Part shown: positions 1 to 13,958 of the stretch, piece by piece
Position numbering within the stretch: the first letter of the stretch is position 1
Layout: every line of letters begins with the position of its first letter
Virus record (IMG/VR): IMGVR_UViG_3300042558_004148
Coordinates: 1 to 64,000 of that record
DNA: 64,000 bases
Direction: 5' to 3' (one strand)
The notes under the pieces: model-generated
What the model saw: only the letters and a program-made list of their open reading frames with translations
Told to the model about the DNA's origin: nothing
Databases searched by the model: none
Program-made: the position numbers and the translations under genes

Positions 1-2
1 CT

Positions 3-848
3 TCAGGTACTGATGGAACTTCAGGTACCGATGGAACAAGCGGAACAAGTGGTACCGATGGAACTTCTGGAACAAGTGGTACTGATGGAACTTCTGGAAC
101 AAGTGGTACTGATGGAACTTCAGGTACTGATGGAACAAGCGGAACTTCAGGTACTGATGGAACTTCTGGAACAAGTGGTACTGACGGAACAAGCGGAACA
201 AGTGGTACCGATGGAACTTCTGGAACAAGTGGTACTGATGGAACAAGTGGTACTGATGGAACAAGTGGTACTGATGGAACAAGCGGAACAAGTGGTACCG
301 ATGGAACTTCTGGAACAAGTGGTACTGATGGAACAAGTGGTACCAATGGAACTTCTGGAACATCAGGTACTGATGGAACAAGCGGAACAAGTGGTACTGA
401 TGGAACTTCTGGAACAAGTGGTACTGATGGAACTTCTGGAACAAGTGGTACTGATGGAACTTCAGGTACCGATGGAACAAGTGGTACCGATGGAACTTCT
501 GGAACAAGTGGTACTAATGGAACTTCTGGAACAAGTGGTACTGATGGAACCTCAGGAACTGATGGAACATCTGGAACCTCAGGAACTGATGGAACCTCAG
601 GAACTGATGGAACAAGTGGTACTGATGGAACAAGTGGTACTGATGGAACAAGTGGTACTGATGGAACAAGTGGTACTGATGGAACAAGTGGTACTGATGG
701 AACAAGTGGTACCGATGGAACAAGTGGTACCGATGGAACAAGTGGTACTAACGGTACATCGGGAACTGATGGAACTAATGGAACATCAGGTACTAACGGA
801 TCTTCAGGTACTAACGGAACATCAGGAACAGCTGGAACTAGCGGCGTA
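3..848 (+). repeat. Collagen-like Gly-X-Y block 1 (GTS/GTD-dominated)
   Basis: Tandem GGAACTTCA/GGTACTGAT/GGAACAAGT 9-mers encoding GTS-GTD; GTN appears only from about 745. Confidence 0.95.
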
Positions 849-3800
849 GATGGAATATCATCAGGTCAAATATATTTTTTCAATGAAAGTATTAATTCGG
901 ACGTTTCAGGTTACAAAGAATTAAGTTTAAATCCAACATCTACGGGTCAAGTAACGGTAACTACAAATTTAACAGGTAGTCAAACTGGTGCTTTAGTTCA
1001 AGATTTTATGACACCTGAATTAGGATTTTCAATAATACCTGGTGGTGTACAAAGATTTAAGTTATATTATTTACTACCTGCGGTAAACGCTGATGTTGAA
1101 GGGTATGTTGAAATCCAATTGGCTGATTCATCGGGGTCTTTAATGGGACCTACAATAACTTCTAATGTTAGTGCATTGCCTTATGTTGACCCAACTAATC
1201 CGGGATTACTTGAGGTTGATATAGTATTACCTACAACATCAATATCCACAACTGATAGAATGGCGATAAGACTTTATCTTAATAATTTAGATTCGACAAG
1301 TCGTAGTGTTGTATTTTATACTGAAGGTAATGCTAACTATTCATATATAATAACATCAGTTGGTCAAATCGCTGGTACATCAGGAACTTCAGGTACTAAC
1401 GGATCATCGGGATCAAACGGAACTTCAGGTACTAACGGTACTGACGGAACATCGGGAACTAATGGAACTTCAGGTACTAACGGTACTAATGGAACATCAG
1501 GTACTAACGGAACTAATGGAACTTCAGGTACTAACGGAACTAGTGGAACGGATGGTACGTCAGGAACTAATGGTACGTCAGGTACAAACGGAACCAATGG
1601 AACATCAGGAACCAATGGAACATCAGGAACCAATGGAACATCAGGAACAAACGGAACCAATGGTACCTCAGGTACTGACGGAACTTCAGGGACTGATGGA
1701 GGTAATTTAACAGCATCTAATTACGTTGCTAAAGGAGTTAAAGGAGGTACCATTCAAACAATAACAAATGGAAGTGACCAAGTTGTAACATTTGTTGATG
1801 AGTTTGACCCTAATGGTTGGATAACATCCAATAAATTCCAACCAAACATTGAAGGGTATTATATTATTCAAGTTTCGGTATGGTGGTATCCTGCGTCAAC
1901 AGTATCAGGGCAAAATAATATCCAACTTAGAAAAAATGGTAGTACACAAGTTGCGATTCAACAATTTCCACTTGTTACTACTGAAGGGTACGGTCAAGAA
2001 ATTGATATTATAGTATATTTTAATGGTTCTACTGATTATATCGAGGTTACTGCTTACACCTCTAATCCAACATCGCAAGACATACACGGTGAGAGTTCAG
2101 GTACTTGGATTACCGGATCATTAGTTGTTGGTGGCGGAACTTCAGGTACTGATGGAACTTCAGGTACTAATGGAACCAACGGAACATCAGGAACCAATGG
2201 AACCAATGGAACCAATGGTACTTCAGGTACTGACGGAACTTCAGGAACCAATGGAACATCAGGTACTAACGGAACATCAGGTACTAATGGATCCTCAGGA
2301 ACCAATGGAACATCAGGTACTAACGGTACTAACGGAACCTCAGGTACTAATGGATCCTCAGGAACCAATGGAACATCGGGTACTAACGGTACTGACGGAA
2401 CATCAGGTACTAACGGAACCTCAGGTACTAATGGATCCTCAGGTACTAACGGTACTGACGGAACATCAGGAGCCAATGGAACTTCAGGTACTAACGGTAC
2501 TAACGGAACCTCAGGTACTAACGGAACATCAGGTACTAACGGAACATCAGGAACTAACGGAACATCGGGTACTAACGGTACCAATGGAACATCAGGTACT
2601 AATGGATCCTCAGGTACTAACGGAACATCAGGAACCAATGGAACATCAGGTACTAACGGTACTAATGGAACATCAGGTACTAATGGAACATCAGGAACCA
2701 ATGGAACATCAGGAACCAATGGTACTGACGGAACATCAGGAACCAATGGAACATCAGGTACTAATGGATCCTCAGGTACTAACGGTACTAATGGAACATC
2801 AGGTACTAATGGAACATCAGGAACTAATGGAACCAACGGAACATCAGGTACTAATGGATCCTCAGGAACCAATGGAACATCAGGTACTAACGGTACTAAT
2901 GGAACATCTGGTACTAATGGATCCTCAGGAACCAATGGAACATCAGGTACTAACGGTACTAATGGAACATCTGGTACTAATGGATCCTCAGGAACCAATG
3001 GATCCTCAGGAACCAATGGAACATCAGGTACTAATGGAACCAACGGAACATCGGGTACTAATGGATCCTCAGGAACTAATGGAACATCAGGTACTAATGG
3101 AACCAACGGAACATCGGGTACTAATGGATCCTCAGGAACTAATGGAACATCAGGTACTAACGGTACTAATGGAACATCAGGAACCAACGGAACTAATGGA
3201 ACTTCAGGTACTAATGGAACTTCAGGTACTAATGGAACTTCAGGAACCAATGGAACTTCAGGAACTAACGGAACCAATGGAACTTCAGGAACCAATGGAA
3301 CATCAGGTACTAATGGAACTTCAGGAACCAATGGAACCAATGGAACTTCAGGTACTAACGGAACTTCAGGAACTAATGGAACCTCAGGAACCAACGGAAC
3401 TAATGGAACTTCAGGAACCAACGGAACTAATGGAACTTCAGGAACCAATGGAACTTCAGGAACCAATGGAACTAATGGAACCTCGGGTACTAACGGAACT
3501 TCGGGAACCAATGGAACCAATGGAACTTCAGGTACTAACGGAACTTCGGGAACCAATGGAACCAATGGAACTTCAGGTACTAACGGAACTTCAGGAACTA
3601 ATGGAACCTCAGGAACCAACGGAACTAATGGAACTTCAGGAACCAACGGAACCAATGGAACTTCAGGTGCTAACGGAACTTCAGGTACTAACGGTACTAA
3701 TGGATCTTCAGGTACTAATGGAACATCGGGTGTAAGCGGATTAAACGGTACTAATGGAACATCAGGTACTAATGGTACTAACGGAACATCGGGTACTAAC

Positions 3801-5582
3801 GGAACATCGGGTACTAACGGAACATCGGGTACTAACGGAACTAATGGAACTTCAGGAACTAATGGGACATCAGGTACTAACGGTACTAATGGAACTTCAG
3901 GAACTAATGGGACATCAGGTACTAACGGTACTAATGGAACTTCAGGAACCAATGGGACATCAGGTACTAATGGAACTTCAGGTACTAATGGAACTTCAGG
4001 TACTAATGGAACTTCAGGTACTAATGGAACATCAGGTATCAATGGTGTAGATGGTGCATCTGGAACATCGGGAACTAATGGAACTAATGGAACTTCAGGT
4101 ACTAACGGTAGTCCAGGTAGTCCAGGTAGCCCAGGAACATCTGGTACTAACGGTACTAACGGAACCTCAGGTACTAATGGAACTTCAGGTACTAACGGTA
4201 GTCCAGGTAGTCCAGGTAGCCCAGGAACATCAGGTACTAATGGTACTTCAGGTACTAGTAGTGGTGGTGCAGCTGCAGTTATTGTATTAGGTGGCGGTAT
4301 TTGTTCATCAATTAGATGTGGTGCGAATAACCAGGCAACTGCAAATTACAGTGCAGCCCTAAGCGGTAGATGCAATTCTTCAGGAGCTGCTTTTTCAGTA
4401 ATCAGTGGAGGTTGCTATAATCGAACAACTAACCTATCCTGTAATTCAGTAATCGGTGGAGGCCTTGTTAACTATATTAGCTCCTGTTATTCAACAATTG
4501 GTGGTGGTTGTCTTAACAGAGTTTGTATTCCAAGAGCTACCATTTCGGGAGGGTTATGTAACCTTATAACTGGTGCTTGCTCAACTATTGGTGGTGGATT
4601 TGATAATTCCATAGCTAGTCGTAGGGCAACTATCGGTGGAGGTAATACCAATAGTGCTGCAGGTGATTCAGATCTTGCAACAATTGGTGGTGGATGTGGA
4701 AATGAGATAGGTAGTTGTGGTATAGCTGCTGTGATTTCAGGAGGATATCAAAATTCCGTGGACGCTGGTTATTCAGCAATCGGAGGGGGAGCTTCAAATC
4801 AGATTGGTTCTGCTAGCCATAAATTTATCGGAGGAGGAAAGGGCAACTTTGTAACTAAAAACACAGGATGCTCCTCAGTTGTTGGAGGACAGGATAATGC
4901 CATTGATGGTGATGCCATAAGATCATTTATTGGAGGTGGATATGGAAATATTATCACTGGTTATGCTTGTCTTAGTTCGATCGCTGGTGGAAGGCAGAAT
5001 GCAATATATCAGGGTGCTTGCCATTCTTTTATCGGGGGCGGAAGATATCATAAAATTCGAAGTGGTTCATGTTATAGCTCCATAGGAGGTGGTTTTAATA
5101 ATGATACAGCAGGTTGCTATAATGTGCATATGTTAGGAAGTAATCTTACTGCTAATCAAAATAACGCAACATTTGTCCAATATATTGTTAAAACTGGTGG
5201 TGGTACTTTTAGTATTGACCACCCAAACCCTAAATTAAGTGATGAATTGAGATTAAATCACTCTTTTGTTGAATCACCAACAGCAGGGGATAATATTTAT
5301 AGATTTAATATTGTAGTTGTTAACGGGGAAGCAATAATTGACTTACCAGATTATTTCAAATATCTAAATAAAGACGCTCAAGTTTGGATAACACCTAAAA
5401 ATGGATTTGGAATTGCTTATGGTGTTATAGACGACACGTATTCAAAGATAACAATTAAGGCAAATCTTGATATAGAATATGATGTACTTGTTATAGGTAC
5501 AAGGAAAGATAAGAATACTAAATTCTGGAAAGGCGCTGAAACACCACAACCCAAAAGAACTGAAACCCCGCAATCAGAATAA
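3..5582 (+). CDS. Giant collagen-like tail or virion fibre protein, 5'-truncated by the window edge (at least about 1,860 aa)
   Basis: Frame 3 is open from base 3 through the listed ATG at 1008 (...GTSGVDGISSGQIYFFNESINSDVSGYKELSLNPTSTG...VQDF-MTPELG), so 1008 is an internal Met. Order: three G-T-[S/D/N] triplet blocks separated by globular domains, a GG beta-roll repeat, then a C-terminal FSIDHP...HSFVESP...IDLPDYF domain of the kind seen at phage fibre ends. Confidence 0.85.
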   Translation, partial: SGTDGTSGTDGTSGTSGTDGTSGTSGTDGTSGTSGTDGTSGTDGTSGTSGTDGTSGTSGTDGTSGTSGTDGTSGTSGTDGTSGTDGTSGTDGTSGTSGTDGTSGTSGTDGTSGTNGTSGTSGTDGTSGTSGTDGTSGTSGTDGTSGTSGTDGTSGTDGTSGTDGTSGTSGTNGTSGTSGTDGTSGTDGTSGTSGTDGTSGTDGTSGTDGTSGTDGTSGTDGTSGTDGTSGTDGTSGTDGTSGTDGTSGTNGTSGTDGTNGTSGTNGSSGTNGTSGTAGTSGVDGISSGQIYFFNESINSDVSGYKELSLNPTSTGQVTVTTNLTGSQTGALVQDFMTPELGFSIIPGGVQRFKLYYLLPAVNADVEGYVEIQLADSSGSLMGPTITSNVSALPYVDPTNPGLLEVDIVLPTTSISTTDRMAIRLYLNNLDSTSRSVVFYTEGNANYSYIITSVGQIAGTSGTSGTNGSSGSNGTSGTNGTDGTSGTNGTSGTNGTNGTSGTNGTNGTSGTNGTSGTDGTSGTNGTSGTNGTNGTSGTNGTSGTNGTSGTNGTNGTSGTDGTSGTDGGNLTASNYVAKGVKGGTIQTITNGSDQVVTFVDEFDPNGWITSNKFQPNIEGYYIIQVSVWWYPASTVSGQNNIQLRKNGSTQVAIQQFPLVTTEGYGQEIDIIVYFNGSTDYIEVTAYTSNPTSQDIHGESSGTWITGSLVVGGGTSGTDGTSGTNGTNGTSGTNGTNGTNGTSGTDGTSGTNGTSGTNGTSGTNGSSGTNGTSGTNGTNGTSGTNGSSGTNGTSGTNGTDGTSGTNGTSGTNGSSGTNGTDGTSGANGTSGTNGTNGTSGTNGTSGTNGTSGTNGTSGTNGTNGTSGTNGSSGTNGTSGTNGTSGTNGTNGTSGTNGTSGTNGTSGTNGTDGTSGTNGTSGTNGSSGTNGTNGTSGTNGTSGTNGTNGTSGTNGSSGTNGTSGTNGTNGTSGTNGSSGTNGTSGTNGTNGTSGTNGSSGTNGSSGTNGTSGTNGTNGTSGTNGSSGTNGTSGTNGTNGTSGTNGSSGTNGTSGTNGTNGTSGTNGTNGTSGTNGTSGTNGTSGTNGTSGTNGTNGTSGTNGTSGTNGTSGTNGTNGTSGTNGTSGTNGTSGTNGTNGTSGTNGTNGTSGTNGTSGTNGTNGTSGTNGTSGTNGTNGTSGTNGTSGTNGTNGTSGTNGTSGTNGTSGTNGTNGTSGTNGTNGTSGANGTSGTNGTNGSSGTNGTSGVSGLNGTNGTSGTNGTNGTSGTNGTSGTNGTSGTNGTNGTSGTNGTSGTNGTNGTSGTNGTSGTNGTNGTSGTNGTSGTNGTSGTNGTSGTNGTSGTNGTSGINGVDGASGTSGTNGTNGTSGTNGSPGSPGSPGTSGTNGTNGTSGTNGTSGTNGSPGSPGSPGTSGTNGTSGTSSGGAAAVIVLGGGICSSIRCGANNQATANYSAALSGRCNSSGAAFSVISGGCYNRTTNLSCNSVIGGGLVNYISSCYSTIGGGCLNRVCIPRATISGGLCNLITGACSTIGGGFDNSIASRRATIGGGNTNSAAGDSDLATIGGGCGNEIGSCGIAAVISGGYQNSVDAGYSAIGGGASNQIGSASHKFIGGGKGNFVTKNTGCSSVVGGQDNAIDGDAIRSFIGGGYGNIITGYACLSSIAGGRQNAIYQGACHSFIGGGRYHKIRSGSCYSSIGGGFNNDTAGCYNVHMLGSNLTANQNNATFVQYIVKTGGGTFSIDHPNPKLSDELRLNHSFVESPTAGDNIYRFNIVVVNGEAIIDLPDYFKYLNKDAQVWITPKNGFGIAYGVIDDTYSKITIKANLDIEYDVLVIGTRKDKNTKFWKGAETPQPKRTETPQSE
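1374..1700 (+). repeat. Collagen-like Gly-X-Y block 2 (GTS/GTN)
   Basis: GTSGTSGTNGSSGSNGTSGTNGTD... in the fibre frame. Confidence 0.95.
1713..2127 (+). other. C1q/TNF-like (BclA C-terminal-like) trimerisation domain inside the fibre
   Basis: Beta-rich ~140 aa between collagen blocks with the pattern F-x-P-x3-GYY-x-I...IQLRKNG...IVYFNGSTDYIEV...TWITGSLV, typical of C1q-like jelly rolls. Confidence 0.65.
2136..4259 (+). repeat. Collagen-like Gly-X-Y block 3 (~700 aa, GTS/GTN, two GSP inserts)
   Basis: About 2.1 kb of near-uninterrupted Gly every third residue; GSPGSPGSPG occurs twice near 4110 and 4200. Confidence 0.95.
4350..5115 (+). repeat. Cys-rich ~15-17 aa GG beta-roll repeats (adhesin-head-like)
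   Basis: About 15 repeats of [SA]-[TVF]-I-[GS]-G-G-x2-N, e.g. SVISGGCYN, STIGGGCLN, ATISGGLCN, SFIGGGYGN. Confidence 0.8.
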
Positions 5583-5589
5583 ATAATTT

Positions 5590-5617
5590 GAAATTTTTTT
5601 CATCAATCGCAGTATAA
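5590..5617 (+). promoter_or_regulatory. Candidate middle (ECF-type) promoter GAAAT-N18-TATAA
   Basis: Same motif and spacing recur upstream of several non-structural genes (34335, 41476, 45611, 46543, 59518). Confidence 0.45.
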
Positions 5618-5634
5618 TAATAAAAACATCTCGA

Positions 5635-6456
5635 TTGATGAAAAAAATAATATTCAACTCATCATTACCTAGATCTGGATCAACACTTTGGCAAAATATA
5701 ATTGCACAAAATCCTGATTTCTATTGCACTCCCACTTCGGGACTTGCTGACATGGTGCTTTCCTCCAAGAACGCTTATAATAATTCGCAAGCTGTTTTAG
5801 CTCAGGATCCGGAGGTCATGAAGAAAGCTTTCATAGGATATTGTATGGCAGGAATTCAGGGATATTTTAATGACATAACGGACAAACCATTTGTACTCGA
5901 AAAAAGTAGGGAATGGGGAGTAAATTACGGACTTCTTAATATGCTCCAGCACGAACCCAAGGTTGTCTGTATGGTTAGGGATCTTAGATCCGTATATTCA
6001 TCAATGGAGAAGAATTTTAGAAAAAACCCACATCGCGAGAATCATGTGCAGAATGTTCCGGAATTGGTCGGTACAACTCTCAGAAAAAGAATAGATATTT
6101 GGGCTGATGGTGTACCTGTTGGTGTTTCTGTTGATAGATTGAGAGATATAATAGATCAGGGAATAGATAAAAATATACTTTTTATTAGATACGAGGACCT
6201 TATGAGCGATCCAGAATCAGAGGTTAAAAGATTCTACGACTATATAGGGATTGACTATTATCCAGGACATAATTTTAAAACAATCGAGCAGGTAACACAT
6301 GAAAATGATTTAATTCATGGAATATACGGTGATCATAAATTAAGAACCGAATTTAAAAGACTACCTGATGATTATGAGGAGATATTAGGATTTGAGCTTT
6401 CTCAGGCAATCAAGAATACCTATGGATGGTTCTATGATTATTTTGAATATGTGTAA
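5635..6456 (+). CDS. PAPS-dependent sulfotransferase
   Basis: N-terminal 5'-PSB loop SSLPRSGSTL; 3'-PB-like MVRDLRSVYSS; IRYEDL motif. Confidence 0.85.
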   Translation: MMKKIIFNSSLPRSGSTLWQNIIAQNPDFYCTPTSGLADMVLSSKNAYNNSQAVLAQDPEVMKKAFIGYCMAGIQGYFNDITDKPFVLEKSREWGVNYGLLNMLQHEPKVVCMVRDLRSVYSSMEKNFRKNPHRENHVQNVPELVGTTLRKRIDIWADGVPVGVSVDRLRDIIDQGIDKNILFIRYEDLMSDPESEVKRFYDYIGIDYYPGHNFKTIEQVTHENDLIHGIYGDHKLRTEFKRLPDDYEEILGFELSQAIKNTYGWFYDYFEYV

Positions 6457-6485
6457 TAAATAATCGATAATTAATTTTTATAATA

Positions 6486-6935
6486 ATGGCAATTTATATA
6501 CTAACCGGTCAACCTCATTCAGGAAAAACAACCCTCGCTAATCATTTAAAAAATTCTTTGGATAAATCTTTCGTTATAGATGGTGACGATCTGAGGGAAA
6601 TACTGAATAATAAGGATTATTCTGAAGCGGGAAGAAGAAAGAACATAGAGACAGCTCATTCGATAGCTAAATACTTATCTAGGCAGGACGTTAATAACAA
6701 TATAATAATATCATTGGTTAGCCCGTATAAAGATCTTAGAGACAGTCTAAAATGCGAAAATGGAGCTGTCGAATTTTATATACATACTTCTGAAATAAGG
6801 GGAAGAGAATCTTTTCATGTAGCAGAATATCAAAAACCTACTGAAGATTTTACTGATATTGACACTACTGGAATATCAGAAACTGAATCACTAAAACAAA
6901 TATTATGGAAAATTGGTCAAAAAAAGTCCATGTAA
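6486..6935 (+). CDS. cysC: Adenylyl-sulfate (APS) kinase, compact form
   Basis: P-loop LTGQPHSGKTT; IDGDDLR; RRKNI; SLVSPY; YQKP. Confidence 0.85.
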   Translation: MAIYILTGQPHSGKTTLANHLKNSLDKSFVIDGDDLREILNNKDYSEAGRRKNIETAHSIAKYLSRQDVNNNIIISLVSPYKDLRDSLKCENGAVEFYIHTSEIRGRESFHVAEYQKPTEDFTDIDTTGISETESLKQILWKIGQKKSM

Positions 6936-7309
6936 AATCATCACTGCAGCCTAAAGATAGTCAATATGCTATGTTTATTGGTAGATGGCAACCACTTCAT
7001 CCAGGTCACAAAGCTATGTTTCAACAAGCTATAAACGATGGTAAGAAGGTATTAATTGCAATCAGAGATATTGAGCCAGATGAAAAAAATCCTTGGACTC
7101 CCAACGAAGTTATGCTTAATATACATTCCGAGATTAGAGATCTAGTTAGTGAAAGGCTAGCAAAGATCATAATAATTCCAGATATATGCTCAGTTGAATT
7201 TGGTAGAGGTGTTGGTTACGATATAATCGAACATATCCCACCAACTGAAATAGCCAATATATCAGCAACTGCGGTTAGAGAGGAATTAAGGAAAGAAGGA
7301 AAATTATAA
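6905..7309 (+). CDS. HxGH (cytidylyltransferase-like) nucleotidyltransferase
   Basis: FIGRWQPLHPGH and ISATAVR signature motifs; overlaps the APS kinase by 31 nt in the -1 frame. Confidence 0.8.
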   Translation: MENWSKKVHVKSSLQPKDSQYAMFIGRWQPLHPGHKAMFQQAINDGKKVLIAIRDIEPDEKNPWTPNEVMLNIHSEIRDLVSERLAKIIIIPDICSVEFGRGVGYDIIEHIPPTEIANISATAVREELRKEGKL

Positions 7310-7563
7310 TGGAAACTAATCAGGAAATTCTAAAAAAGTCAGATAGAAAAGAAAATAGATCTAATATGATAAGACACATATTAAAAACACTTTCTTATAG
7401 AATATTAGGCACGATGACAACTGTAATTACTGCATATATGTTAGGAGCTTCGGTAGAATTAGCATCATTACTAGGTATGGGAGAGATTGTTTTCAAGCCT
7501 ATTATATATTTTTTGCATGAGAGAATTTGGTATAAATTCATCAGGATAGGATCAAAAAAATAA
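7309..7563 (+). CDS. DUF2061-like small membrane protein
   Basis: RHILKTLSYRILGT...IYFLHERIW pattern with two hydrophobic stretches; ATG overlaps the upstream stop. Confidence 0.75.
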   Translation: METNQEILKKSDRKENRSNMIRHILKTLSYRILGTMTTVITAYMLGASVELASLLGMGEIVFKPIIYFLHERIWYKFIRIGSKK

Positions 7564-7567
7564 GCAC

Positions 7568-8443
7568 ATGAATATAATATTGGAGGTTTCTGGTGGATTG
7601 GGTAAAAGCTTTATGTCCACCGCTGTAGTAAAAGCTTTACGTAAACAGTATACTAGAGATAACATAATAGTGGTAACATCATATCCCGATGTTTTTAAAG
7701 GTAATAATAATGTTAATAGAATTATTACCCACGCAAATGCGGGTCCAATTTATAGGGATTTTATTAACAACAAGGAAGCTAAAGTATTTATTACCGATCC
7801 ATACACAACCTCCGATTTTATAACGGAAAAAAAACATCTTATCGAGATATGGTGCGATTTGTGTGGTGTCCCTTATGATGGGGAACTGCCTGAATTATTT
7901 ATAAGTAAATCTGAAAGACAATATTATGAGCAGTTTTATAAATTAGATAAGCCTATAATGGCTATACATCCGAATGGTGGAAGCATAGAGCAACCTCTAA
8001 AATATAGCTGGACCCGAGATATTCCGCAACCAATAATTGAGAATATTATAGAGCACTATAAAGATGATTATTCCGTGGTACATATAAGAAGGGAAGATCA
8101 ATTTCAATATGATAACACAATTTCTGCATTGGATAATTTTAGAAGCATTGCAATTATGCTGACCCTTTCAGAAAAAAGACTTCTTATAGACTCATCTGCG
8201 ATGCATATAGCATCTTCCCTGGGTTTACCGTCAACAGTTGCCTGGATCGGAACAAATCCCAAAGTTTTTGGCTATAATATACATGATAATATAATTGCTA
8301 ATCCACATACGGAAAAGCACGATATATCGAATAATTACTATCAGAAATATATGTTATTTGAGGATATCAGTAGAATACCATATTCCGATATGAATGACAT
8401 TTTTAATATTAGCGATATTATAGATAGCATAAATAAACAATAA
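7568..8443 (+). CDS. GT9-like (ADP-heptose-type) glycosyltransferase
   Basis: SGGLGK...TAVVKALRK N-terminus; LLIDSSAMHIASSLGLPSTVAW C-terminal GT-B motif. Confidence 0.7.
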   Translation: MNIILEVSGGLGKSFMSTAVVKALRKQYTRDNIIVVTSYPDVFKGNNNVNRIITHANAGPIYRDFINNKEAKVFITDPYTTSDFITEKKHLIEIWCDLCGVPYDGELPELFISKSERQYYEQFYKLDKPIMAIHPNGGSIEQPLKYSWTRDIPQPIIENIIEHYKDDYSVVHIRREDQFQYDNTISALDNFRSIAIMLTLSEKRLLIDSSAMHIASSLGLPSTVAWIGTNPKVFGYNIHDNIIANPHTEKHDISNNYYQKYMLFEDISRIPYSDMNDIFNISDIIDSINKQ

Positions 8444-8454
8444 AAATAAAAAAT

Positions 8455-8730
8455 ATGGAAAATGAATTAAAATTACCTGAAGATCTAATTTTAGAAATTC
8501 AAAATCTGAAAGAGGTTTTGATGGATAATATAATTAAAGTGGGTAGATTAAGTGTACAGAAATCCTTTTACGAGAAGGACCTTTCCGCTATAAACAACGA
8601 ATTAGAATCCTTACATAACGAAGCTTCTGACATATATGCTAGGGAGGAAGCTTTGCAGGAGAAGGTAGTCGGTAAATACGGTAAAGGTAAACTCGATTTT
8701 GAGACTGGATTATTTACGAAGGATATGTAA
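8455..8730 (+). CDS. Small acidic coiled-coil hypothetical protein
   Basis: Clean ORF with A-rich leader inside the operon; heptad-like helix. Confidence 0.6.
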   Translation: MENELKLPEDLILEIQNLKEVLMDNIIKVGRLSVQKSFYEKDLSAINNELESLHNEASDIYAREEALQEKVVGKYGKGKLDFETGLFTKDM

Positions 8731-8736
8731 TTCCTT

Positions 8737-9669
8737 ATGAAGAAACTCTGTATAGATATAAGCGAGGCTAGAGCTATTGGCGATACATTATGTGTATCGC
8801 CAGTTTTGCGTAAACTATATTACTCATATGGTAGAAAAATATCTATAATAACTCATCATACAGATATATTTAGAAATAATCCATATGTTGATTCTCTATA
8901 TCTTCCTGGTGATCTTGATTTGGATGATGATTTCGAAATATTTAGAACTTTCGATGTAAACTATAAATCCGATGGCATATGCAATAAGCATAATACTATT
9001 GACATTAGGCAGTTCCATGCAATTAGCCTTGGATTCATGTTAAATCAGGAGGAACTTACTTTGGATTTTTTCCCTTCTGATTTTGAAGAAATACAGGGAC
9101 TTCCCGATAGATACGTTCTTATACATCCCGTACAAAACTGGGAATCCAGAACATGGGATAGAGAAAAATGGATTCTATTAGTCAGAGCTTTGAATGCGGG
9201 CGGAATAAGTGTGGTTTCTGTCGGAAAGGAGTCATCCGAAATGGGTGGATCCAATGTTCAAAAGCCAACCTTTAATTTTGATATTGAATTGGGTATGAAT
9301 TTACAGAACAAAACATCATTATCTCAGACGTGGTGGCTGATTGAAAAAAGTGAATGCTTCGTTACTATGGATTCTGGTCTTCTACATTTAGCAGGTACTA
9401 CCGATTCTGAAATAATTCAATTAGGCAGTTCAATAGATAATAAGTTTAGAGCACCATATAGAAAGGGATCTCAGGAATATAAATACCATTATGTTTCTGG
9501 TGGATGTAATTTGAAATGTGCGTCTGATATAAAATATGGTGTAAGAGAATGGAACACGATACAGGGAATACCTTCGTTGGTCGGATGTCTGGAGGGAAAG
9601 AAAACTTTCGAATGCCATCCAAGCGTAATGAGTGTTTATAATAAAATAATGTCCACTGTTAATAAATAA
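8737..9669 (+). CDS. GT9-family glycosyltransferase with C-terminal Cys cluster
   Basis: AIGDTLCVSPVLRKL; FVTMDSGLLHLAG; C-x3-C...C-x8-C near the C-terminus. Confidence 0.8.
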   Translation: MKKLCIDISEARAIGDTLCVSPVLRKLYYSYGRKISIITHHTDIFRNNPYVDSLYLPGDLDLDDDFEIFRTFDVNYKSDGICNKHNTIDIRQFHAISLGFMLNQEELTLDFFPSDFEEIQGLPDRYVLIHPVQNWESRTWDREKWILLVRALNAGGISVVSVGKESSEMGGSNVQKPTFNFDIELGMNLQNKTSLSQTWWLIEKSECFVTMDSGLLHLAGTTDSEIIQLGSSIDNKFRAPYRKGSQEYKYHYVSGGCNLKCASDIKYGVREWNTIQGIPSLVGCLEGKKTFECHPSVMSVYNKIMSTVNK

Positions 9670-9677
9670 GTATCCGG

Positions 9678-10607
9678 ATGGGTAATAAAATAATATTGAT
9701 TAGTTCATATTGCGATAATGAGGAAAAGATTAGTGTATTAGAATCTAATATAAGAACACTAAAAAATCTCGGTCTGGATGTTATGCTTAATAGTCCTATT
9801 GATATACCAAATAGGGTCTCCTCATTATGCGATTATTATATAAGAACTAAAGATAATCCGATTATCGACTGGCCAATTAAATCGGTATCGGTTTGGTCTG
9901 AATATCGATGTAAAGGGAAGAAAATAATTATGAATAGATGTCTACCTGATTACGGATGGGCAAATATCCATCAGGTAAAAAAATTATCAGAATATGCATT
10001 AACGTATGATTATGAATATTTCTACCATATAATATATGATATAAAAATTGACGATACCGTTTTGAGTGGTATACTATCCGATGCGGAATGTAATTTCTAT
10101 CATTTCCATGAGCATTGGGTAAGTCTACATTTTATGCTATTTGATAGGAAAAACTTAGTATCATTTATATCTGGATTAAATATAAATGAATATATTGAAT
10201 TTTGTGGAATTGCTGAAACCTGGCTAAAAAACTACCTGGAGAATTCAGATTTGCCGTATAAAGTGGATGATTGTTATGTTGATGACCATATACTTTTTCA
10301 TAATGGAGTAGATCTTTTTAATTATTCGGGATTTTCTGAATTTAGGTATTTCATAGCTAAAAATGCTATGGAAAATAATTCTATTAAAATTTATTTCTAT
10401 GGTGTTAAAAATCATATTGATTTAAAAATCCACCTTAATTCAACCACAAAAATATACGAAATAGCTGATAGAGATATAATAGATCTTGAATTATCTCGCG
10501 ATGACATGATATCTGTCATAATTGAATATAACGGATTAACCGAAGATATAACTGAAAAAATAAGATCCATAACACACAATAATATTAATTTATATGAAGA
10601 GAATTAA
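9678..10607 (+). CDS. Hypothetical protein in the glycosylation cluster
   Basis: 309-aa ORF overlapping the next gene; no confident family. Confidence 0.6.
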   Translation: MGNKIILISSYCDNEEKISVLESNIRTLKNLGLDVMLNSPIDIPNRVSSLCDYYIRTKDNPIIDWPIKSVSVWSEYRCKGKKIIMNRCLPDYGWANIHQVKKLSEYALTYDYEYFYHIIYDIKIDDTVLSGILSDAECNFYHFHEHWVSLHFMLFDRKNLVSFISGLNINEYIEFCGIAETWLKNYLENSDLPYKVDDCYVDDHILFHNGVDLFNYSGFSEFRYFIAKNAMENNSIKIYFYGVKNHIDLKIHLNSTTKIYEIADRDIIDLELSRDDMISVIIEYNGLTEDITEKIRSITHNNINLYEEN

Positions 10608-13473
10608 ACTATTATATTTAACCCCACATCTATCAACCGGTGGAATGCCTCAGTTCGCACTGAAGAGAATACAGAAACTTAATGAATATAGTGATGAGAT
10701 AGAAATCTTTGTTGTCGAGTACTCCAAATTTAGTGATACCTATGTTGTCCAAAGAAATTCAATACTTGAAATGATTGACAGTGATCATTTCTTTACACTG
10801 GGGGATACATCCGATACTAGAAGAAAATATGAGATAATTCAGATAATTAAGGATAATGATATAGATTTAGTTCATTCAGAGGAAATATTAGAGGGATTTG
10901 AAAGTTTTAATAAGATCCCTGCTGATTTAATTAACATGTTATATTCCGATGATAGAAGCTGGAGAATGATTGAAACCTGTCATAATATTTGGTTTGATCC
11001 GAAAGAATTTAAAAAATTAAAACCTGATGCATATTCATTAATTTCACCACATCATACGGAAAAAACATTCGCATCTGAGTCCTCATATAAGGAGCTTCAT
11101 CTATATCCATATGAGAATAAAACAGATATAAGAATAAAAAATAGGAAGAATTCTATCAAAAAACTGGGATTTGATAGAAATAAGAAAAACGTTCTCAATG
11201 TTGGATTATGGACTAGTGGAAAGAATCAGGGAGAGGGAATAGAAATTGCTAGATTCATAGAATCATCTAGTCCTGATGTATTTTTTCATTTTGTAGGTAA
11301 TTTAGCTCCAAATTTCGAAAATTACTGGGGAGATATAACAAAGAATCTACCAAGCAATGTTAAGATATGGGGGGAGCGTGACGATGTTGATGAATTCATG
11401 ATAGCATGTGACGCCATGATGTTTAATTCTACCTGGGAATGCAATCCTTTAGTTATAAGAGAAGCCATAGGATATGGCATGAAGATATTAGCCAGAAATC
11501 TACCGCAATATTATAACATGTATGATGGATACATCACTCCGATAGAGGGTGATATAAAAGAAATATCGGGACGACTTATTGATATGCTTGAATCTGATAT
11601 TGAATATCAGGTACCTGATGATTCTAATTTTGGTAGGACATTATTGGATTTCTATAGGAAGGTAATGGAGATAGAAATAACACCACAGCCTAAAATAGAA
11701 AATGACTACGAGTTTATACAACATTTTGTTGGTCAGCCCTATTTCGAATTAAGAGGCAGTAGTAGTAATAAATTTAAGGTGGAATTCTCTGATGGTGGAA
11801 AAATTATACATTCGGATCTCCTAAATTTTAATAGCTGGTCGAAATTAAACAGAAAATATTATACCAAATGGGACACAACGGTATATGAAAATGGTGAAAT
11901 AATATATAAGAATTCATTAGATCTTAGGGACAGAAGAGTTTATATTGCATTTGGATCTAAATCTCTAGGTGATACTCTTGCGTGGATACCTTACATGGAG
12001 GAATTTAGAAAAATTCATAATTGCGAATTGATAGTTTCTACGTTCATTAATCACTTATTCATTGAACAGTATCCCAATATTACTTTTGTCAATCCAGGGG
12101 AAACTGTAAATAATTTATATGCCCAATATAATATTGGATGGTATTATGACAGTAACGGAAATATTGATTATAATAAGGTTCCAAACGACTTTAGAAAACA
12201 ACCTTTACAGAAGACAGCCACTGATATACTCGGTCTCGAATATAAGGAAATAAAGCCTCGTTTAAATTTACCTAACGTGAAAAAAAAGAAAAAAGTTGGG
12301 ATAGGATTTCATTCAACTGCTCAGGCCAAATACTGGAACAATCCTAACGGATGGCAAGAGGTAATTGATCATCTTAATTCGATTGGTTATGAATGCATGA
12401 TATATTCCAGAGAGGGAGACGGATATATGAATAATGCATATCCAAAAAATGTTGATGTGTTTAAAGGCGGAAATCTACAGGATGTAATAAATGATCTGTG
12501 TGAGTGTGAATTTTTCATTGGCTTGGGCTCTGGATTAAGTTGGCTAGCTTGGTCATGTAAATTACCAATCATTTTGATTTCTGGATTTAGTGAAAGATTT
12601 TCTGAAACTTCATCCGACACATATAGAATTATTAACGAGGATGTTTGCCACGGATGCTTTAATTCGGAAATGCTAGATGCTGGAGATTGGAATTGGTGTC
12701 CATTACATAAAAATTCGGAGAGAATGTTTGAGTGTACAAAACAAATTAATTCTAATATGGTTACCAAGGAAATAGATAGATTAATTGGGGAAAATCACAT
12801 ACCAAATTTTGATTGGGGTTGGATGAACGATGGTAGTTCTAATGGTAATTATCACAAGAAACTTATGTATAATGAGATATTTGAGCAAAAAATATATGAG
12901 AGATTCTTTGAAGTTGATCATTCCGATATTGTATTGGATGTTGGTTCTAGCGTCGGCCCATTCACATATTCGATATTAAAGAAAAATCCTAAACATGTAT
13001 TTTGTATAGAACCTAGTGAGAGTGAATTTACTACACTAGTTAAAAATACATTAGGTAATCCGGTTACTCATATAAATAAGGGATTATCAGATATAAATGG
13101 AGTTATCGAATATGATCAATTATTTGGAGGAGAAACACATATGGAATCCATTACCTTTGATAAGCTCGTTAAATTATACGGTCTGAATAGGATAGATTTC
13201 ATGAAAACTGATTGTGAGGGCGGTGAATATGAGATTTTTAAGAAAGATAATCTTGACTTTATTAAAAAAAATATAAAGAAGATTGCCGGCGAATGGCATT
13301 TAATGAGTAAAGAAAATAAAGAAAAATTCAGGGATTTCCGGGATAATATATTAATAGAGTTCGATCGATATGAGGTATTATCATTAGATGGTATTGATAT
13401 AAAATGGGATCTATGGAACGAACATTTTATAGAGTATTATAATGAGGTCCTTATATACATAGATAATAGATAG
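10594..13473 (+). CDS. Three-domain enzyme: GT4 glycosyltransferase + Aah/TibC-type (BAHT) protein O-heptosyltransferase + FkbM-family methyltransferase
   Basis: GT4: PHLSTGGMPQ, GERDDV, ECNPLVIREA. BAHT: RVYIAFGSKSLGDTLAWIPY and the iron-finger VCHGCFN...WNWCPLHK...FECTKQI. FkbM: VLDVGSSVGPF, IDFMKTDCEGGEY. Confidence 0.8.
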   Translation: MKRIKLLYLTPHLSTGGMPQFALKRIQKLNEYSDEIEIFVVEYSKFSDTYVVQRNSILEMIDSDHFFTLGDTSDTRRKYEIIQIIKDNDIDLVHSEEILEGFESFNKIPADLINMLYSDDRSWRMIETCHNIWFDPKEFKKLKPDAYSLISPHHTEKTFASESSYKELHLYPYENKTDIRIKNRKNSIKKLGFDRNKKNVLNVGLWTSGKNQGEGIEIARFIESSSPDVFFHFVGNLAPNFENYWGDITKNLPSNVKIWGERDDVDEFMIACDAMMFNSTWECNPLVIREAIGYGMKILARNLPQYYNMYDGYITPIEGDIKEISGRLIDMLESDIEYQVPDDSNFGRTLLDFYRKVMEIEITPQPKIENDYEFIQHFVGQPYFELRGSSSNKFKVEFSDGGKIIHSDLLNFNSWSKLNRKYYTKWDTTVYENGEIIYKNSLDLRDRRVYIAFGSKSLGDTLAWIPYMEEFRKIHNCELIVSTFINHLFIEQYPNITFVNPGETVNNLYAQYNIGWYYDSNGNIDYNKVPNDFRKQPLQKTATDILGLEYKEIKPRLNLPNVKKKKKVGIGFHSTAQAKYWNNPNGWQEVIDHLNSIGYECMIYSREGDGYMNNAYPKNVDVFKGGNLQDVINDLCECEFFIGLGSGLSWLAWSCKLPIILISGFSERFSETSSDTYRIINEDVCHGCFNSEMLDAGDWNWCPLHKNSERMFECTKQINSNMVTKEIDRLIGENHIPNFDWGWMNDGSSNGNYHKKLMYNEIFEQKIYERFFEVDHSDIVLDVGSSVGPFTYSILKKNPKHVFCIEPSESEFTTLVKNTLGNPVTHINKGLSDINGVIEYDQLFGGETHMESITFDKLVKLYGLNRIDFMKTDCEGGEYEIFKKDNLDFIKKNIKKIAGEWHLMSKENKEKFRDFRDNILIEFDRYEVLSLDGIDIKWDLWNEHFIEYYNEVLIYIDNR

Positions 13474-13510
13474 TATTAAAAATATGATAAATAGAAAAAC
13501 TTTTTAATTT

Positions 13511-13882
13511 ATGCGAATAGACGTTTCTGTGGGAGAAATTGTTGATAAGTTATCAATATTAGAAATTAAGAAAAATAATATATCGGATAGGGATAAACTT
13601 GTTAATATAAACAGTGAGTTTGAATACCTCTATTCGATTGTATTTAACGATCTTTTGATTGATTACGAAGATTTTTCCGGACTTGTTTTAATCAACGAGG
13701 AATTATGGAAGATAGAGGATAGGATAAGAATAAAGGAAAGAAGAAAAATATTTGACTCGGAATTTATATCTTTGGCTAGATCAGTTTATATAACTAATGA
13801 CAAAAGGTCAGAAATTAAAAAGTATATAAATTTAAAATATGGTTCTATTTTTACCGAGGAAAAATCATACGAAAAATACTAA
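13511..13882 (+). CDS. DUF6165-like protein
   Basis: VSVGEIVDKLSILEIK...NEELWKIEDRIR...ARSVYITNDKR pattern, typically found in glycosyltransferase clusters. Confidence 0.7.
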   Translation: MRIDVSVGEIVDKLSILEIKKNNISDRDKLVNINSEFEYLYSIVFNDLLIDYEDFSGLVLINEELWKIEDRIRIKERRKIFDSEFISLARSVYITNDKRSEIKKYINLKYGSIFTEEKSYEKY

Positions 13883-13895
13883 GTATTAGAAATTG

Positions 13896-13932
13896 AGAAA
13901 ATGCTGGATCATAAGTCCAGCATTTTCTTTTT
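13896..13932 (+). terminator. Rho-independent terminator closing the modification operon
   Basis: 13-bp perfect stem AGAAAATGCTGGA/TCCAGCATTTTCT followed by a T tract. Confidence 0.8.
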
Positions 13933-13933
13933 A

Positions 13934-13941
13934 GATATATA
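13934..13941 (+). promoter_or_regulatory. Candidate late promoter GATATATA
   Basis: 17 nt upstream of the neck gene; motif recurs before structural genes. Confidence 0.6.
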
Positions 13942-13958
13942 CATAAATAATTAAAAAG

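Follow-up and report, generated by a model that had tools for sequence, protein, structure and literature searches.

A candidate small ATP sulfurylase in a sulfation gene cassette of a jumbo phage

Gene content of the cassette

The region of interest lies in a 64,000-nt window, positions 1 to 64,000 of the 373,485-bp virus record IMGVR_UViG_3300042558_004148, which has terminal repeats. It encodes a PAPS-type sulfotransferase, a short APS kinase, a small HxGH nucleotidyltransferase and a DUF2061 protein (Table 1), as originally predicted, and the genes are tightly coupled. There are 29 nt between the sulfotransferase and kinase genes, the kinase and HxGH genes overlap by 31 nt, the HxGH and DUF2061 genes overlap by 1 nt, and a 4-nt gap then leads to a fifth conserved gene. 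The original prediction also held that no Sat or CysDN is present in the window, and this is true of the whole virus record, where neither PF01747 nor PF01507 gives a match. The window has no tRNA, and a blastn search of the cassette against GenBank phages found nothing.

Table 1. Features of the cassette and its surroundings (window coordinates)
Position	Strand	Length (aa)	Assignment	Profile matches
1008..5582	+	1524	Collagen-like (G-T-S/N triplet) repeat protein with a C-terminal 'IGGG..N' repeat region; probably a tail fibre	
5635..6456	+	272 (from ATG at 5638)	PAPS-type sulfotransferase	PF13469, 60.5 bits; PF00685, 50.3 bits; phrog_27463, 1.9e-32
6486..6935	+	149	Short APS kinase (CysC-like, truncated lid)	PF01583, 48.4 bits (cut-off 21.1); TIGR00455, 48 bits (cut-off 138.7)
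6905..7309	+	134	HxGH nucleotidyltransferase; candidate minimal ATP sulfurylase (sulfate adenylyltransferase)	PF01467, 27.3 bits (cut-off 21)
7309..7563	+	84	DUF2061 small membrane protein; probable membrane tether or partner	PF09834, 58.1 bits
7568..8443	+	291	Conserved fifth gene; probably a divergent GT9-like glycosyltransferase	No Pfam hit
8737..9669	+		GT9 heptosyltransferase-like glycosyltransferase	PF01075, 51.2 bits; TIGR02201 and TIGR04414, weak

The sulfotransferase reading frame opens with a TTG that is followed at once by an ATG, which is the likelier start and gives a protein of the same length as its homologues. The translation contains 'PRSGST' and 'RDLRSVYSS', which probably correspond to the 5'-phosphosulfate loop and the 3'-phosphate motif of sulfotransferases. 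The kinase matches PF01583 only over residues 4-97, so the lid is short, and because of the shortened lid region it does not reach the full-length equivalog cut-off of TIGR00455. Its best solved relatives are all APS kinases (8a8h, 3cr7 and 1d6j), and the P-loop, DGD..R, YS..R..N and SP motifs are aligned to those of 8a8h and 3cr7.

The DUF2061 protein has two hydrophobic segments, at about residues 32-50 and 52-70. The fifth gene is probably GT9-like, since a language-model feature search places 66 of its 100 nearest named clusters in viral GT9 families, and it has two collinear weak matches to the GT9 protein further downstream; this hints that the acceptor is a glycan. A profile search of this gene product against PDB sequences found nothing useful. 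The putative tail fibre upstream is a possible target of modification, and in related loci the cassette lies next to fibre-like, sheath and tube genes.

Sequence and predicted structure of the HxGH protein

The HxGH protein belongs to the HxGH nucleotidyltransferase superfamily. H32 and H35 of its HPGH motif are nearly invariant across 70 diverse relatives, and R125 of the C-terminal ISATAVR motif is invariant. The family motifs are GRWQPxHxGH, (I/V)RD, DExNP, YGRxVGY and ISATxIR. A first AF2 model, built from 20 close sequences, was poor in its C-terminal half (pLDDT 69.6) and was replaced by a model built from 70 sequences, with pLDDT 95. The predicted fold is Rossmann-like alpha/beta, with VIA Z scores of 8-10 to NMNAT, PPAT and NadR over 111-115 residues. 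A complex prediction for the kinase and the HxGH protein scored 0.00, which is evidence neither for nor against binding.

By sequence and fold the protein is nearest to NadM-type NMNAT and to PPAT, not to Sat. The highest VIA scores are to 1f9a (Z 10.0) and 4nah (Z 9.9), and the best Foldseek match is NadM 2qjo, which is also matched at E 8.6e-6 in the PDB sequence search. Sat ranks only tenth (Z 7.6 to 1v47), there is no PF01747 match, and no Sat appears in the PDB sequence search even at E<=10. The similarity to NadM (TIGR01527, PRK01153) includes the GR(F/W)QPxHxGH motif, an NP(F/W) turn and the SxTxxR motif, but only the ATP-binding half (residues 19-95) is matched, and Foldseek aligns only 76-85 residues well. 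NCBIfam NadM models score 30-36 bits, and the best scores in the NadM/NadR group, 36.1, 33.2 and 26.7 bits, are 3-10 times below the cut-offs of 409, 127 and 181. In the alignment 'RD' stands where NMNATs appear to have a small 'GS' after strand 2, and the glycine-rich YGRxVGY loop follows strand 4, where NMNATs seem to differ.

Sat-type enzymes (PF01747; for example T. thermophilus 1v47 and yeast 1j70) share the superfamily (VIA Z 6-7.6), an HxxH-type motif and an ISxTxxR-type motif with the phage protein. However, the Sat chains matched are 343-529 residues long, and the PUA-like N-terminal domain that Sat seems to carry cannot fit in 134 residues. The phage sequence has GRWQPLHPGH and EFGRGVGYD in place of the QxRNPxHxxH and GRDHAG motifs that appear to be typical of Sat, and only a shared HxxH and a Gly-Arg loop remain. 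The phage protein is not a member of the Sat family itself.

Conservation and fusions

Relatives are encoded in 490 viral loci, of which 80 were fetched. The kinase-HxGH-DUF2061 order recurs in 76-77 of these 80, so that the arrangement is not due to chance: the kinase is present, adjacent to HxGH, in 76, DUF2061 in 77 and the sulfotransferase in 61, in fixed order. The fifth gene is syntenic in 54 of 80 loci, while the GT9 gene at 8737..9669 is seen in only 8 and is not part of the widely conserved cassette. DUF2061 is often duplicated or tandem-fused.

The family holds 2274 representatives at E<=1e-3, which include kinase-HxGH, HxGH-kinase and HxGH-DUF2061 fusions, the last in two proteins. 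The fused kinases are canonical APS kinases, scoring 231, 139 and 172 bits in three examples. DUF2061 is also fused to a canonical APS kinase in a Chitinophagaceae locus and lies in a Mesorhizobium nodH-nodPQ locus. These fusions support a role as a membrane partner, as originally proposed. Distant fused homologues in cultured Xylella, Stenotrophomonas and Xanthomonas phages, however, lie among DNA-metabolism genes with no sulfotransferase nearby.

Relatives in cellular genomes

Cellular genomes were scanned with a 13-sequence alignment, since the 70-sequence alignment was too diverse to seed the search. The Chitinophagaceae locus has the same parts as the phage, in the order DUF2061-APS-kinase fusion (161 bits), HxGH and sulfotransferase, and its genome has no Sat or CysD. 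BLAST showed no homology between the neighbour in this locus and the fifth gene of the phage cassette. Within Chitinophagaceae HxGH is in 1 of 81 sampled genomes, and CysD is in 50 of 80 genomes without HxGH and in 0 of 2 with it; with only two carriers, this contrast is too thin to be significant.

Of 32 HxGH-carrying cellular genomes, Sat is in 1 and CysD-like genes are in 2. Sulfotransfer_3 is over its cut-off in 23 of them, against 2 of 14 control genomes. In four of the five HxGH-carrying genomes checked the only APS-kinase homologue is the one beside HxGH, and the fifth has a second copy on another contig. CysQ-like Inositol_P genes lie in 12 loci, and sulfatases flank the fusion in one locus. 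HxGH is not always the only route to APS, since in an Acidobacteriota locus (L091) the HxGH-APS-kinase fusion (172 bits) lies beside cysD-cysN, and the two routes can therefore coexist.

In three SAR11 loci the gene order is HxGH, an aprM-like membrane protein, AprB, AprA, a 116-aa ORF and TauE, and in four further loci the kinase-HxGH pair abuts aprMBA. This position immediately upstream of aprM-aprB-aprA is one that sat seems to occupy in other sulfur oxidizers. In 151 Pelagibacterales genomes, HxGH is in 122 and AprA in 122, with both in 116 and neither in 23 (odds ratio 74, p 2e-16, uncorrected for phylogeny), while Sat is in 6. These statistics are confounded by shared ancestry and by streamlined lineages that lack sulfate assimilation anyway. 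In most SAR11 genomes the pair has no sulfotransferase beside it, and the SAR11/SAR86 clade, which provides the apr evidence, is separated from the phage clade by a long branch and is only about 40% identical. P. ubique has been noted to have aprBA, cysC and cysQ but no sat or cysDN (PMC5069961).

Predicted function

The original prediction was that the small HxGH protein makes APS and so completes a path from sulfate to a sulfo-acceptor. Comparative genomics supports this inference, and the protein is probably a minimal sulfate adenylyltransferase of a previously unnamed family within the HxGH superfamily, although this rests on context alone, without biochemical evidence. It would therefore be a new family carrying out a known reaction. 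In the inferred mechanism, the HxGH motif (H32, H35) and the ISATxIR motif (R125) hold ATP, as in other members of the superfamily, while family-specific invariant basic and glycine-rich elements, R54 in '(I/V)RD' and R101 in 'YGRxVGY', hold sulfate and replace the pocket that NMNAT uses for NMN. Transfer of AMP to sulfate would give APS and PPi. This reaction is thermodynamically uphill, and the enzyme would therefore always be coupled to the adjacent APS kinase, by translational coupling or by fusion, with the kinase pulling APS on to PAPS. The sulfotransferase would then use PAPS, the acceptor being probably a glycan built by the neighboring GT9-like transferases, on the virion fibre or on the host envelope, and DUF2061 may tether the enzymes to the membrane. 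In SAR11 the same family probably runs in reverse next to AprBA, turning APS and PPi into ATP and sulfate.

The same logic, in which the kinase pulls an unfavorable first step, applies to the bifunctional PAPS synthases (metazoan PAPSS1/2, Aquifex and Thiobacillus Sat-APS kinase, and CysN-CysC), where a sulfate-activating domain is likewise coupled or fused to APS kinase. Here the activating domain is neither Sat nor CysDN, the whole two-enzyme unit is only about 280 residues in the phage, and there is an added small membrane partner. The proposed product, APS, is the same as that of the GTP-driven CysDN (NodPQ) enzyme, which is also found with sulfotransferase and DUF2061 genes, but its fold (PAPS-reductase-like plus GTPase) is unrelated and there is no GTPase subunit here.

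Alternative functions

The alternatives are all weaker. The least unlikely is a different APS- or PAPS-linked adenylyl transfer, such as an APS:phosphate adenylyltransferase (ADP-sulfurylase) or a salvage or regulatory step on APS, PAPS or PAP, since the genomic context ties the family to APS and PAPS metabolism without fixing the co-substrate or the direction. The presence of CysDN beside the fusion in L091 suggests a role that does not duplicate CysDN, and there is a weak HxGH-DHHA1 fusion, DHHA1 being a family that seems to include the NrnA-type pAp phosphatases. On the other hand, HxGH enzymes appear to use NTP and release PPi, most carriers have no other route to APS, and fusions resembling PAPS synthases are what would be expected of the first step of the pathway. 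An adenylyl transfer that, together with the kinase, builds another 3'-phospho-ADP-X compound, in the manner of PPAT plus dephospho-CoA kinase, has parallel chemistry (adenylyl transfer to an oxyanion, then 3'-OH phosphorylation); PPAT is as close structurally as NMNAT, and in SAR11 the pair lies near genes for CoA-dependent enzymes. This is the most doubtful option, since all five carriers checked have a canonical CoaD over its cut-off, the kinases belong to the APS-kinase family and not to CoaE, with the residues that apparently bind APS conserved, and the links to the sulfotransferase, CysQ-like genes, sulfatases and Apr all point to sulfate.

The two alternatives raised with the original prediction, NMN adenylyltransferase and heptose-1-P adenylyltransferase (the missing RfaE domain II), are weakened. 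An NMN (or NaMN) adenylyltransferase of the NadM/NadR type, serving phage NAD+ salvage, would fit the closest known family, and the phage also encodes a 505-aa NAPRTase-family protein next to a NADAR-domain gene about 230 kb away, with no NMNAT beside it. However, the shared GRWQPLHPGH signature probably contacts ATP and says nothing about the acceptor, the protein is shorter than NMNATs (168 aa or more), and no NAD gene is linked to it in 80 viral or 80 cellular loci. Four of five carriers checked have a canonical NadD, the phage genome has another NMNAT-like domain in a 693-aa protein, and NMNAT activity explains neither the fusions to APS kinase or DUF2061 nor the apr linkage. Activation of a sugar or polyol phosphate for the neighboring glycosyltransferases, as by RfaE domain II/HldC or glycerol-3-phosphate cytidylyltransferase, is similarly improbable. 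GT9-like genes follow the cassette, and TagD and HldC are of similar size and share the fold (VIA Z 6.5 for 2b7l and 5.8 for 5x9q), but neither TIGR02199 nor TIGR01518 is among the 22 NCBIfam hits at E<=0.1, while a different gene of the same genome, at about 317 kb, scores 107.5 bits on TIGR02199. Across loci the constant partner is the kinase and not a glycosyltransferase, and this function does not explain the apr operon position in SAR11.

Implications for sulfur metabolism

Sat and CysDN appear to be the only sulfate-activating enzymes known, and literature searches on DUF2061, SAR11 and ATP sulfurylase, phage APS kinase with sulfotransferase, and novel ATP sulfurylases found no description of this family. 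It is somewhat more likely than not that the small HxGH protein defines a third, so far unrecognized class, and an enzyme of about 130 residues would change how sulfur metabolism is read from genomes. A PAPS-generating unit of about 280 residues could also be useful for enzymatic sulfation. In phages, the widespread cassette (at least 490 viral contigs) would be self-sufficient from sulfate to APS to PAPS to a sulfated product and would let a phage sulfate a target without relying on host sulfate activation, which matters if hosts lack that pathway. The cellular relatives would be the long-missing 'sat' of SAR11 and may play the same part in SAR86, MGII archaea and others. They would close the AprBA sulfite-oxidation route, with ATP gain, and feed orphan cysC, cysQ and sulfotransferase genes in organisms thought unable to activate sulfate.

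The sulfation cassette and its genome

The cassette lies in the first 64 kb of a 373,485-bp virus record with direct terminal repeats, a jumbo phage of about 33% G+C. Its four same-strand ORFs encode a sulfotransferase (PF13469 60.5 bits, PF00685 50.3 bits), a 149-aa APS-kinase-like protein (PF01583 48.4 bits, matched over residues 4-97 only), a 134-aa HxGH nucleotidyltransferase (PF01467 27.3 bits) and an 84-aa DUF2061 protein (PF09834 58.1 bits). The successive gaps and overlaps are +29, -31 and -1 nt, and the sulfotransferase probably starts at the ATG at 5638 rather than the TTG at 5635. The best solved relatives of the kinase are all APS kinases, and the P-loop, DGD..R, R..N and SP motifs align. 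Neither Sat (PF01747) nor CysD-type (PF01507) genes occur anywhere in the phage genome. The original prediction of a tightly coupled gene set without Sat or CysDN in the window stands, and a search of the whole genome for the canonical genes that would have contradicted its interpretation was negative.

Coordinates of the cassette and of other features noted in this study (L numbers are fetched loci; G000:C1 is the contig of the phage's own genome)
Feature	Location	Size
Collagen-like repeat arrays in putative fibre proteins	window:1-849 and 1008-5582	
Sulfotransferase, APS-kinase-like, HxGH and DUF2061 genes	window:5635-7563	
Probable divergent GT9-like glycosyltransferase gene	window:7568-8443	291 aa
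Multidomain protein	window:10594-13473	959 aa
Protein with RNA-ligase-like N-terminus and C-terminal HxGH domain	G000:C1:125241-127322 (L002:70-2151)	693 aa
NADAR-domain and NAPRTase-family proteins	G000:C1:235356-238180 (L167:4357-7181)	505 aa (NAPRTase-family protein)
RfaE-domain-II-like adenylyltransferase	G000:C1:317346-317624 (L001:1390-1803, - strand)	137 aa
HAD-like phosphatase inserted in a viral cassette	L035:369-710	113 aa
HxGH and apr genes, SAR11 SAG	L120:7959-13088	126 aa (HxGH)
Kinase-HxGH pair and neighbours, Ca. Pelagibacter sp. HIMB1495	L129:5694-9980	
Kinase-HxGH fusion and flanking sulfatases, Planctomycetota MAG	L144:5464-9914	

GC skew is positive in all 32 of the 2-kb windows, so cumulative skew rises steadily, and no tRNA gene was found in the 64 kb. 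In positions 1-14,000 the long ORFs are all on the + strand. The cassette follows a 1524-aa collagen-like repeat protein. The putative fibre proteins carry very long G-T-S/N triplet arrays with an 18-63-nt period and up to about 115 copies, and the C-terminus carries many 'IGGG..N' repeats. The large multidomain protein looks, by eye only, like a glycosyltransferase region followed by a C-terminal methyltransferase region, and its homologues lie near the cassette in 15 of 80 viral loci. The separate RfaE-domain-II-like adenylyltransferase (TIGR02199, 107 bits), together with the GT9 genes, suggests that the phage makes and transfers ADP-heptose.

Sequence and predicted structure of the HxGH protein

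Sequence searches place the 134-aa protein nearest NadM and archaeal NMN adenylyltransferases, but the match covers only the ATP-binding half, and the scores are far below the family cut-offs (36, 33 and 27 bits against 409, 127 and 181). PDB entry 2qjo matches at E 8.6e-6 over residues 19-79. An AlphaFold model built on 70 diverse relatives is confident, with pLDDT 95, and Foldseek aligns only 76-85 residues of it to NMNAT and PPAT. An exhaustive VIA search gave Z 10.0 for NMNAT 1f9a, 9.9 for PPAT 4nah, 9.4 for NadM and 8.2 for NadR, with the ATP sulfurylase 1v47 at rank 10 (Z 7.6) and other Sat entries at about Z 6. The protein is thus a bona fide HxGH-superfamily enzyme (H32xGH35 and I119SATxxR125), and is not a member of the Sat family. 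The family has its own invariant features, GRWQPxHxGH, (I/V)R54D, DExN62P63, YG100R101xVGY105 and ISATxIR125. R54 and the Gly-Arg loop are inferred to sit where NMNATs bind NMN, and would suit a small anion.

Conservation in viral genomes

A scan of viral contigs found 490 loci encoding relatives at 62-70% identity. Among the 80 that were fetched, the kinase is present in 76, DUF2061 in 77, the sulfotransferase in 61 and the 291-aa gene in 54. Gene order is conserved, most absences are at contig ends, and DUF2061 is often duplicated or tandem-fused. The cassette usually lies next to fibre-like, tail sheath and tail tube genes, and related loci have UspA1-repeat and ice-binding beta-roll fibre proteins beside it. 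In L035 and about 12 other viral loci a HAD-like phosphatase is inserted between the kinase, HxGH and DUF2061 genes, and could be a PAP phosphatase or a pyrophosphatase.

A profile search of 1.8 billion representative proteins found 2274 relatives at E<=1e-3. The best 150 include many fusions, which are of the kinase-HxGH, HxGH-kinase and HxGH-DUF2061 types, the last in representatives P0172 and P0289. The fused kinases include full-length canonical APS kinases, with P0190 at 231 bits and P0181 at 139 bits. P0190 sits on a phage contig and is followed by DUF2061, while P0172 sits in a cassette reading sulfotransferase, APS kinase, a 178-aa gene and then the HxGH-DUF2061 fusion. PHROG 10255, a 230-aa 'kinase', is such a fusion and matches both window proteins. 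Fusions in both orders are the pattern seen for Sat and APS kinase in PAPS synthases. Other fusions are methyltransferase-HxGH, HxGH-DUF6717, and HxGH with a weak DHHA1 match (NrnA-like) (P0239, P0275 and P0291), of which P0291 lies in a phage early-gene region next to Thy1.

Cellular relatives

A scan of one genome per prokaryotic species found at least 360 loci, of which eighty were kept. Most are from Pelagibacteraceae, and others are from SAR86, Bacteroidota, Marinimicrobia, Omnitrophota, Planctomycetota, Acidobacteriota, MGII and Halobacteriales. The kinase is adjacent or fused in nearly all. The Chitinophagaceae locus L093 encodes a DUF2061-APS-kinase fusion (161 bits), then HxGH, then a sulfotransferase. 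CysQ-like Inositol_P genes, the PAP phosphatase family, lie nearby in twelve loci. In the Planctomycetota locus L144 two sulfatase genes flank the kinase-HxGH fusion, suggesting that sulfate released from sulfated glycans may be re-activated. In the Acidobacteriota locus L091 an HxGH-APS-kinase fusion (172 bits) is divergent from cysD-cysN, which links the family to sulfate activation but also shows that it can coexist with CysDN. DUF2061 itself lies with nodH, nodP and nodQ in a Mesorhizobium nod locus (10.1101/2022.04.26.489235).

Across 32 carrier genomes Sat is in 1 and CysD-like genes are in 2, while Sulfotransfer_3 is over its cut-off in 23, against 2 of 14 control genomes. In four of the five carriers checked, the only APS-kinase homologue is the one beside HxGH, and the fifth (G001) has a second copy on another contig.

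Association with aprBA in SAR11

SAR11 genomes carry AprA (about 990 bits) but no Sat, although Sat does occur in 6 of a larger set of 151 Pelagibacterales genomes. In SAR11 loci L118, L120 and L127 the gene order is an MFS transporter, a TenA-like protein, HxGH, a 264-aa aprM-like protein with four hydrophobic segments, AprB, AprA, a 116-aa ORF and TauE, a sulfite-exporter-family gene. Lineage-I aprBA is reported to be always preceded by aprM (PMC2211403). HxGH thus lies immediately upstream of aprM, in what appears to be the position of sat in the sat-aprMBA clusters of other sulfur oxidisers. In L147, L148, L158 and L160 the kinase-HxGH pair abuts aprMBA and is convergent with it, and a tree shows the apr adjacency in two separate SAR11 subclades. 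In most SAR11 genomes, however, the pair sits between a methyltransferase, an M24 creatinase-like peptidase, a HalD-like Fe/2OG enzyme and an enoyl-CoA hydratase, with no sulfotransferase or DUF2061 beside it.

Co-occurrence of HxGH and AprA in 151 Pelagibacterales genomes of at least 85% completeness
	AprA present	AprA absent
HxGH present	116	6
HxGH absent	6	23

The two genes are associated in these genomes (odds ratio 74, p 2e-16), although the statistic is not corrected for phylogeny. At least 18 genomes have HxGH within about 2 kb of aprA. P. ubique has been reported to have aprBA, cysC and cysQ but to lack sat and cysDN (PMC5069961), and no paper assigning a function to the HxGH family was found.

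Proposed function

The nearest fold relatives are NMNAT and PPAT. The phage has the NAPRTase-family gene near a NADAR-domain gene, resembling phage NAD+ salvage or reconstitution genes, and the absence of an NMNAT beside them gives the NMNAT alternative a little support. The phage genome has another HxGH nucleotidyltransferase domain resembling NMNAT/NadD, at the C-terminus of the protein with an RNA-ligase-like N-terminus. Among the five cellular carriers checked, however, canonical CoaD is present in all five and NadD in four, so HxGH is not needed there as PPAT or NaMNAT. A long branch separates the phage and SAR11 clades, and CysDN coexists with the family in one MAG. Distant fused homologues in cultured Xylella, Stenotrophomonas and Xanthomonas phages lie in DNA-metabolism regions without a sulfotransferase. 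The kinase-HxGH fusions of Xylella phage Salvo (gp32) and Stenotrophomonas phage DLP_6 (AAY80_227), at 31-36% identity, are annotated only as 'kinase' or 'hypothetical protein' and lie among early and DNA-metabolism genes, which in Salvo include a MazG-like pyrophosphatase, with a cysteine dioxygenase gene about 3.5 kb upstream.

The simplest reading that fits the phage cassette, the fusions, the Bacteroidota cassette, the Apr operons and the pathway holes is that the family interconverts sulfate and ATP with APS and PPi. The original prediction that the small HxGH protein makes APS is supported by this evidence, which is indirect in the absence of an enzyme assay, and is considered more likely than not, though well short of certain. 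In the phage, the protein would supply APS to the coupled kinase, giving PAPS for the sulfotransferase. The acceptor may be a glycan made by the adjacent GT9-like enzymes, on the fibre or on the host envelope, and DUF2061 probably tethers the enzymes to the membrane. Rather than belonging to the Sat family, the protein most likely represents a new, minimal family that performs the same reaction as Sat.
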